From Leidyana gryllorum EB-2025a (Eukaryota > Protista > Apicomplexa): 64,000 nucleotides of DNA. The position numbers and the translations under genes are program-made. Positions 19,098-21,081 of this stretch are shown here, in pieces. How positions within the stretch are numbered: position 1 is the stretch's first letter; the number at the start of each line of letters is the position of its first letter. The DNA lies in the NCBI GenBank assembly GCA_048772705.1, contig JBLWGC010000133.1, forward strand, positions 124,001 to 188,000, given 5' to 3'. Under the pieces are notes generated by a model. It did not search any database. It was not told where the DNA came from and saw only the letters and a program-made list of their open reading frames with translations.

Positions 19098-19984
19098 TCA
19101 ATAAGTCGAGAGCCACCGGTCCAGCTCCTCGGAACCCCCAATCAACTTCCCATCGATAAAGACCTGGGGAACGCTGGCCTTGCCAGTCATGGCACCGACC
19201 ACGATTCCTCTGTTCCAATCGGGTAGCGGAATATCGACGTAGGCGAGTTCGCGAGCCTTCAGTGCGGCTTTCGCATGGATGCAGAACCGGCAGCCCTCTT
19301 TGGAGAGAAGAGCAATTCGGGGAGGCGGCTGGGCCTTGGGTGCAATGTACTTGAGCATAGTGTCCGCGTCCGACTGTCCATAAGGATCGGCACCTTCTTC
19401 AGGCTCCAGAAAGATCTTTTCAATTGTACCGTTGCGTACGAGCATTGAATAACGCCACGATCTACACACAAGGAGAAAGAAGTAGTGGCAGGTTGTGAGA
19501 AGTATCGTGCGCGGTTACACGCGAGTGGGTACACAAGGACATTTACTCAGACCCACACACGCGCGAACACACACACGGAGACACAGGTGCGCGTGTCGCC
19601 GGTGGCTTACCTTTCTCCGAATCCAATGGCAGTCTTATCGACGTTGAGCCCCATTGCCTTTGCAAATTCACCATTACCGTCCGGTAGCATCTTTACATGT
19701 TGAATCTTGTGAGCAGCGGCCCAAGCGTTCATAACAAAAGTGTCGTTTACGGAGGTACAGAAGACGTCGTCCACACCCGCTCTCCTGAAGGCCGGGAAGA
19801 GTTCGTCATACCTTGGCAAATGACTCGTGGAACAGGTGGGTGTGAAAGCCCCTGGCAAGCCGAAGATAACCACGGTTTTTCCTTTCACCAAGTCCGCCAG
19901 TTTCCAATCCTCCCACCCGTCTGAGCCGAAGACGGCAAAGTTACAGGAGGGTAGGGGTTTCCCTTGCATATGGCAAACGGGCAT
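19098..19984 (-). CDS. Hybrid peroxiredoxin (Prx5-type)-glutaredoxin, PGdx-like, copy A (245 aa)
   Basis: Exons 19984-19611 and 19461-19098. Contains GLPGAFTPTCSTSHLPRY, SVNDTFVMNAW, LPDGNGEF, GFGERSWRYSMLV and SDADTML, then a Grx domain EGCRFC...SVPQVFIDGKLIGGSEEL. Confidence 0.93.
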
Positions 19985-20171
19985 CTTGAGAGGGGTGGTT
20001 GTGAGAAGTGTGTGTACTGGAAGGCAGAATTGTGTTTTTGATATTTCTATTGTCGTTTGTGGCGCACACAAATTTGGAGTTGGCACGCGTTTGATGTTTA
20101 AGAACGGATGGTAGTCCCAAATAATGTTTTTATGGCCTTGAAGGCATTTTATAAAAGTGCCAAAGATCAAA
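19985..20171. promoter_or_regulatory. Probable bidirectional promoter between the two Prx-Grx copies
   Basis: A 187-bp spacer, AT-richer than its flanks, lies between divergent ATGs. It contains the self-complementary TTTTATAAAA at 20147-20156. Confidence 0.5.
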
Positions 20172-21081
20172 ATGCCGATTTGTGACATGGAAGGCAAGCC
20201 TATCCCCGAGACGCGATTTCACGTCTTTGGGTTGAGGGGTTGGGAGGAGTGGAAAATAGCAGACCGATGTAAAGGCAGGACTGTCATTATCTTTGGTCTT
20301 CCCGGTGCTTTCACGCCCACTTGCTCTACCAGTCACTTGCCGAGGTATGATGAACTATACCCAGTTTTCAAAAAGCTCGGAGTGGATGATATTTACTGTC
20401 TTGCCATCAATGATACATTCGTCATGAACGCCTGGGCGGCGGCTCATCGGACTGAGCACGTGACAATGCTTCCCGATGGCAACGGCGACTTCTCTCGACA
20501 AATGGGACTTGCTGTAGCCAAAAGATCCATTGGATTCGGTGAAAGGTGAGACATGCTTCAGGTTATCTATCTCTTCTACTTTTACTCATTACACGGGATC
20601 GGGCGGCGACGACGCTTTCGCATTCTCGCTTTCTCTTTCGTTGTCTCTGCCTGCCTGTCTGTCTGTCTGTCTTGTTGTGGTGTTGCGGCGGTTATGCTGC
20701 TTGTCACGTAGGTCGTGGAGGTATTCGATGCTGGTGAAAGATGGGATCATTGAGAAGATTTTCGTTGAGCCGGAACAAGGCCTCGATCCTTATCAGCTCT
20801 CAGACGCCGACACAATGCTCCACTACCTGAGCCCGGAAGCGAAGGCCCCGCCTCGCATAGCCATCCTCACAAAGGAAGGCTGCCGCCACTGTTCCATCGC
20901 CAAACAAGAGCTCTTCAAACGCCAGTTACGTTTTGTAGAGGTACCTTTGCCCGATTGGAACAGAGGCGTCGCCATTGGTGCTTTCACTGGAAAGTCATCG
21001 GTGCCCCAGGTCTTCGTGGACGGCGTCTTAATTGGGGGTTCCGAGGAACTCAAGACTTGGCTTAATTCACAATCGCTCTAA
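20172..21081 (+). CDS. Hybrid peroxiredoxin (Prx5-type)-glutaredoxin, PGdx-like, copy B (247 aa)
   Basis: Exons 20172-20545 and 20712-21081. Same motifs as copy A, with Grx site EGCRHC. Confidence 0.93.

Follow-up and report, generated by a model that had tools for sequence, protein, structure and literature searches.

Proteins in which a Prx5-type peroxiredoxin is fused to a glutaredoxin (PGdx, or hybrid Prx5) have been described as specific to bacteria (PMC2679010). The Haemophilus enzyme is exclusively GSH-dependent (PMC1361801), Bordetella PrxGrx is a GSH-dependent peroxidase (PMC7794356), and 1nm3, the structure of Haemophilus influenzae HI0572, is listed as a tetramer (PMC8113037). Apicomplexa are known for another Prx5-family peroxidase, AOP (PfAOP, and the Prx5 of Toxoplasma and Neospora), which is of prokaryotic origin, tentatively alphaproteobacterial in the published tree, and which uses GSH and glutaredoxin (Djuika et al. 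2015, PMC5361646). AOP stands alone, has an N-terminal targeting or pre-sequence and depends on a separate glutaredoxin. Eukaryotic Prx5, plant PrxII and fungal Ahp1 belong to the same fold family, with the same PxxxTxxC site, and are also stand-alone proteins.

We have analysed a window of 64,000 nt from the genome of the gregarine Leidyana gryllorum, in which two neighbouring genes combine these features in a different way. They share with the Haemophilus and Bordetella enzymes the Prx5–Grx architecture, the length (245 and 247 residues compared with 241 in HI0572), the aligned catalytic Cys, Thr and Arg, the dithiol CxxC and the VPQ and GG motifs. They differ from them in being nuclear eukaryotic genes with a spliceosomal intron, present as two paralogues, in having CRFC or CRHC instead of CPFC together with gregarine-specific motifs, and in having no adjacent glutathione reductase gene (the match to this enzyme is on another contig, C173). 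Like AOP, they appear to be Prx5-family peroxidases of bacterial origin recycled by GSH and glutaredoxin; unlike AOP, they have the glutaredoxin fused. On the features that can be tested, the encoded proteins are, as judged from their sequences, PGdx, and neither AOP nor eukaryotic Prx5. Our literature search, for which most subscription papers were out of reach, found no paper reporting a eukaryotic PGdx; gregarine PGdx are present in public transcriptomes, yet apparently undescribed.

Structure of the locus

The two PGdx genes are intact and lie head-to-head on opposite strands, their start codons 187 nt apart. Copy A, on the minus strand, starts at the ATG at 19984 with a first exon of 374 nt (19611–19984) that encodes the N-terminal part of the Prx5 domain, matched by both Pfam and 1nm3. 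It includes the codon of the peroxidatic Cys51 (19834–19832), which forms the PxxxTxxC site with Pro44 and Thr48. A putative spliceosomal intron of 149 nt (19462–19610, GTAAG...TAG, with a pyrimidine-rich 3′ end) is followed by a second exon (19098–19461, stop codon TAA) encoding the end of the Prx5 domain with the catalytic Arg128, the linker and the glutaredoxin domain; the Grx site CRFC (Cys182/Cys185) is at 19292–19281 and is accompanied by the VPQ cis-Pro and the GG motif. Copy B, on the plus strand, starts at the ATG at 20172 and has the same layout: a first exon of 374 nt (20172–20545) with the N-terminal part of the Prx5 domain recognised by Pfam and the Cys51 codon at 20322–20324, a putative intron of 166 nt (20546–20711, GTGAG...TAG) and a second exon (20712–21081, stop codon TAA) with Arg128, the linker and the glutaredoxin domain, whose site is CRHC (Cys182/Cys185, 20881–20892). 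Another in-frame ATG, upstream of copy A, falls within gene B and was for this reason not taken as the start. Between the two start codons, the spacer (19985–20171, 187 nt) contains a TATA-like imperfect palindrome beside the start of gene B, which is borderline when compared with shuffled sequences (24/500).

The introns are placed by homology and by their GT–AG borders. Since both first exons are 374 nt long, both introns fall in phase 2 within the codon for Arg125, and the predicted spliced products of copies A and B are 245 and 247 residues long. The coordinates and the split of Arg125 agree with the preliminary description of this DNA, which gave each gene a single intron at an identical phase-2 position. 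It had also found the two introns to be unalike, and their similarity score of 17 is indeed that of shuffled sequences (mean 17.0). Without splicing, a stop codon follows directly after Arg125 in both reading frames, and the product would therefore lack the catalytic Arg128 and all of the Grx domain; we infer that both introns are spliced. The spacer may act as a shared bidirectional promoter. The downstream neighbour is an intron-rich SMC gene, which from its motifs we take to be of the SMC2 type, while the upstream neighbour gives weak TOG, CLASP and HEAT matches. Of the two housekeeping neighbours originally named, SMC2 and XMAP215, the SMC gene is confirmed and XMAP215 is weakly supported.

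Domain identity and catalytic residues

The window sequence was searched, aligned and placed in trees exon by exon, and the gregarine homologues P0002, P0003 and P0136 served as queries in further searches. Pfam identifies exon 1 as Redoxin and exon 2 as Glutaredoxin. Among solved structures 1nm3 is the best match for either exon, at 142 bits for exon 1 (next best 98) and 115 bits for exon 2 (next best 33, with free glutaredoxins at 33 or less). Eukaryotic Prx5, PrxII and Ahp1, in contrast, reach 45–92 bits compared with the 142 of 1nm3 and fall on the opposite side of the exon-1 tree. The two exons are colinear with residues 3–122 and 124–240 of 1nm3, respectively, and Cys49, Cys180 and Cys183 of the structure align with Cys51, Cys182 and Cys185 of the window proteins. 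Pro44, Thr48, Cys51 and Arg128, that is, PxxxTxxC plus the conserved Arg, are present in both copies, as are the dithiol CxxC, VPQ and GG. All catalytic residues are thus in place, and the PGdx identity first proposed is upheld.

TIGR02190 is the best model for both Grx domains, with 89.8 bits for A and 83.1 for B against a cut-off of 99.3 bits, and it outscores GRX_euk by 89.8 to 36.5 bits; three gregarine orthologues exceed the cut-off (100.9–108.8 bits). An Arg at the second position of CxxC is rare, being found in 1 of 321 bacterial PGdx, that one with CRHC, and the two inner positions of the motif vary widely across the same set. The Prx domain begins at residue 5, in keeping with the earlier observation that no targeting presequence is visible, and the N-terminus, MP-xxx-M[EQ]G, is like that of the gregarine orthologues. 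A cytosolic location is likely for these two reasons, and both genes likely encode cytosolic PGdx.

Relatives and origin of the genes

The top homologues of the window proteins are gregarine proteins from EukProt transcriptomes, with 64–65% identity (53–68% by exon): two from Gregarina sp. Poly1, one from Gregarina sp. Pseudo9, two from Protomagalhaensia wolfi and one from P. sp. Gyna. Unlike the window pair, most gregarine EukProt PGdx keep CPFC or CPYC, and they are known only from transcriptomes. Next in the match list come thousands of Prx + Grx proteins at 53–61% identity, of which all the named ones are bacterial. No eukaryotes other than gregarines appear among the top PGdx matches, in lists so saturated with bacteria that a distant eukaryotic PGdx could be hidden. 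NCBI-sourced gregarine proteins (for example, from Gregarina niphandrodes) are also absent from these top matches, unlike those of the EukProt Gregarina species, and scans of metagenomes, including one with a degenerate DNA pattern derived from P0002, found no gregarine PGdx locus.

The window pair and the gregarine PGdx form one clade, with support of 100/98 in the exon-1 tree and again 100/98 in the exon-2 tree, and share two short motifs found in 0 of the 321 bacterial PGdx. In the exon-1 tree all PGdx are set apart from stand-alone Prx5 of bacteria, green algae and the host itself (94/92), which places the Prx domain on the side expected from the bacterial origin originally suggested. The maximum-likelihood comparison with bacterial PGdx and eukaryotic Prx5 that had been proposed as a check did not group the Prx domain with eukaryotic Prx5; the AU test against that grouping is borderline (p = 0.054, with three such rows), and the tree contains long branches. 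In the betaproteobacterium Derxia lacustris, two PGdx-type Prx domains that closely resemble each other lie on separate contigs (L014 and L115); the second was left out of this tree. In the exon-2 tree, and only there, the gregarine clade has betaproteobacterial neighbours, lying amid Betaproteobacteria and unnamed sequences. A full-length tree, from which the window genes were left out, singles out no donor, and the sampling of donors is biased because the bacterial rows were picked by similarity. The donor was probably a proteobacterium.

The head-to-head pair is, from the comparisons made here, a lineage-specific duplication. Every tree recovers copies A and B as sisters (100/95 and 100/91), and their orthology with the Protomagalhaensia paralogues is rejected in seven of eight AU tests. 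In the full-length tree the pairs from Protomagalhaensia and from Gregarina sp. Poly1 each stay within the lineage they come from. With the window pair, three pairs are each bound to a lineage, and there have therefore been at least three independent duplications. Identity between A and B at codon positions 1, 2 and 3 is 79, 81 and 36%, respectively, in exon 1 and 69, 83 and 36% in exon 2. At four-fold sites identity falls to 26%, which means saturation, whereas by exon the proteins retain 69 and 67%; on these grounds the duplication is old and both copies have been under purifying selection. The old inverted duplication of the preliminary description is thus supported by its four-fold sites and third codon positions alike.

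These results point to one old transfer from a bacterium to gregarines. The transfer predates the host species and is common to at least two other gregarine genera. We are fairly confident that a bacterial PGdx was taken up by an ancestor common to the host and at least Gregarina, Protomagalhaensia and Blabericola, gained an intron and later underwent inverted duplication in the host lineage; transfer, intron gain and duplication in that order are the simplest reading.

Gregarines come from bacteria-rich animal guts, and a bacterial gene in such an assembly might reflect contamination or mis-assembly. Here that explanation can practically be dismissed: both copies have GT–AG introns and would be broken if unspliced, their GC content matches that of the window, their contig, which is at least 188 kb long, has the intron-rich SMC gene right beside them, and their orthologues in several gregarine species make up a separate clade. 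Introns, eukaryotic neighbours and orthologues in other gregarines likewise bear out the earlier view that the genes are integrated in a eukaryotic genome. A fusion that arose convergently inside gregarines, from their native Prx5 and glutaredoxin, would have had material at hand, since the host encodes a dithiol Grx as well as four Prx5-like proteins that stand alone, and the borderline AU test leaves it some room. We nevertheless regard it as very improbable. The match to bacterial PGdx is colinear through both domains and the linker, at 50–60% identity, the host's own Prx5 scores only 62 bits on 1nm3, and the gap between 115 bits for exon 2 and 33 or less for free glutaredoxins gives the Grx domain an independent PGdx affinity by which a convergent fusion is largely refuted.

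The two other explanations accept a bacterial source and differ as to the route. PGdx occurs in cyanobacteria, and the gene could have arrived with the cyanobacterium that gave rise to plastids, by way of the red-algal ancestor of the apicoplast, to be kept only in gregarines; a clade of gregarines and cyanobacteria is not rejected by AU tests (p = 0.10 and 0.11). No tree joins the two, however, a branch with 97/98 support lies between them in the exon-2 tree, algal, plant and chromerid PGdx are absent from the top matches, in the nearest ESM Atlas clusters 96–100% of the named members are bacterial, and many losses would be needed. An endosymbiotic origin therefore seems quite unlikely to us. 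Alternatively, a single transfer early in Apicomplexa might have given rise to both proteins, AOP of Plasmodium and Toxoplasma being the same gene minus its Grx domain and the fusion surviving in gregarines. The prokaryotic origin of AOP and its use of GSH and Grx (PMC5361646) would fit, and PfAOP (1xiy) is the second- or third-best PDB match for gregarine Prx domains. It shows no special affinity for them, however, scoring 110–113 bits against gregarine and 107–116 bits against bacterial PGdx Prx domains, where 1nm3 scores 212–218 bits, and the published AOP tree is tentatively alphaproteobacterial. As the PfAOP scores are equal for the two groups, a proxy and not a tree, AOP was probably a separate transfer, and we hold a common origin to be unlikely. 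The preferred reading remains a bacterial PGdx acquired by a gregarine ancestor.

Proposed mechanism and redox setting

To judge from the conserved residues and from orthologues in bacteria, Cys51 would be activated by Thr48 and Arg128, would reduce H2O2 or ROOH and would become oxidised. The fused Grx, through Cys182-x-x-Cys185, would then re-reduce Cys51 using glutathione, and the resulting GSSG would be recycled by the glutathione reductase of the host with NADPH. Within an oligomer, Grx is likely to reduce the Prx of another subunit, on the pattern of the Haemophilus tetramer, where the Prx–Grx contact reportedly runs between subunits (Kim et al., 2003). Our search of the host assembly (15.5 Mb in 237 contigs) shows that glutamate-cysteine ligase (GCS), glutathione synthetase and glutathione reductase are all encoded, so that the glutathione cycle can close. 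The system had been called self-contained, which holds only for the built-in Grx step, as it continues to depend on an outside supply of GSH, glutathione reductase and NADPH.

The genome further encodes catalase, GPx, two 2-Cys Prxs, TrxR, four stand-alone Prx5-like genes and a dithiol Grx, and with catalase, GPx and other Prxs present PGdx is an add-on to existing defences. The host TrxR is closest to apicomplexan TrxRs, presumably the Cryptosporidium and Plasmodium entries. Cytochrome c1 and ATP synthase gamma were not found in the draft genome, the same pattern of absence as reported for gut eugregarines (PMC8051059). The likely role of PGdx would be extra, thioredoxin-independent scavenging of peroxide in a parasite seemingly without respiratory complexes III and V.

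Several of these other antioxidant genes have features of their own. The four stand-alone Prx5-like genes (L002 on contig C109, L006 on C230, L007/L123 on C216 and L008 on C126) are divergent; L008 has no peroxidatic Cys and has a long Pro/Gln-rich N-terminus, and the gene on C216 lies ~ 4 kb from the GPx gene. The 2-Cys peroxiredoxin genes L004 and L005 (C202:65220-65645 and 83514-83942) are similar to one another and 18 kb apart, another duplicated antioxidant gene. On the same contig, catalase (L124, C202:258883-260037) matches the whole Pfam model in one uninterrupted frame. A further gene, L093 (C115:124074-124211), is apparently intronless and by eye resembles the bacterial ArsC/Spx family, a possible further transfer.

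Four-unit PGdx chains in other gregarines

In two other gregarines we found proteins with four tandem PGdx units per chain, P0136 of Gregarina sp. Poly1 (1075 residues) and P0227 of Blabericola migrator (1154 residues). The two are 31% identical and colinear over 1086 residues, and their units are orthologous one by one, with the caveat of long branches. The peroxidatic Cys is kept in unit 2 of both and in unit 1 of P0136, and the complete Grx CxxC in unit 4 of both and in unit 3 of P0136. No four-unit gene was found in the Leidyana assembly; the match on contig C216 was considered and ruled out, as it extends to one Prx5 unit only. As P0227 escaped a word-index search with P0136, the known range of the protein is a lower bound. 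An AlphaFold model made from a single four-unit sequence had a mean pLDDT of 35 and was unusable.

The four-unit chain is a candidate covalent pseudo-tetramer, in which peroxide sensing might be confined to the N-terminal units and glutathione reduction to the C-terminal ones. The divergent A/B pair could represent a two-gene route to the same division of labour, by way of a co-expressed hetero-oligomer. We offer only as a speculative idea, itself rather doubtful, that gregarines have turned the symmetric PGdx tetramer of bacteria into asymmetric specialised assemblies, both as the four-unit chain and as the co-expressed A/B hetero-oligomer.

Significance

Lateral gain of antioxidant enzymes is a familiar theme among low-oxygen protists and the chemistry of the enzyme is known, which limits the surprise of the present finding. 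The adoption of PGdx by a eukaryote is nevertheless well supported, and the adopted gene has an intron, has been kept in more than one gregarine genus, has been duplicated repeatedly and has yielded a new four-unit architecture. This suggests that Apicomplexa acquired another bacterial Prx5-family enzyme besides AOP, and that in gut parasites whose respiration is reduced the defence against peroxide by means of glutathione has been under sustained selection.
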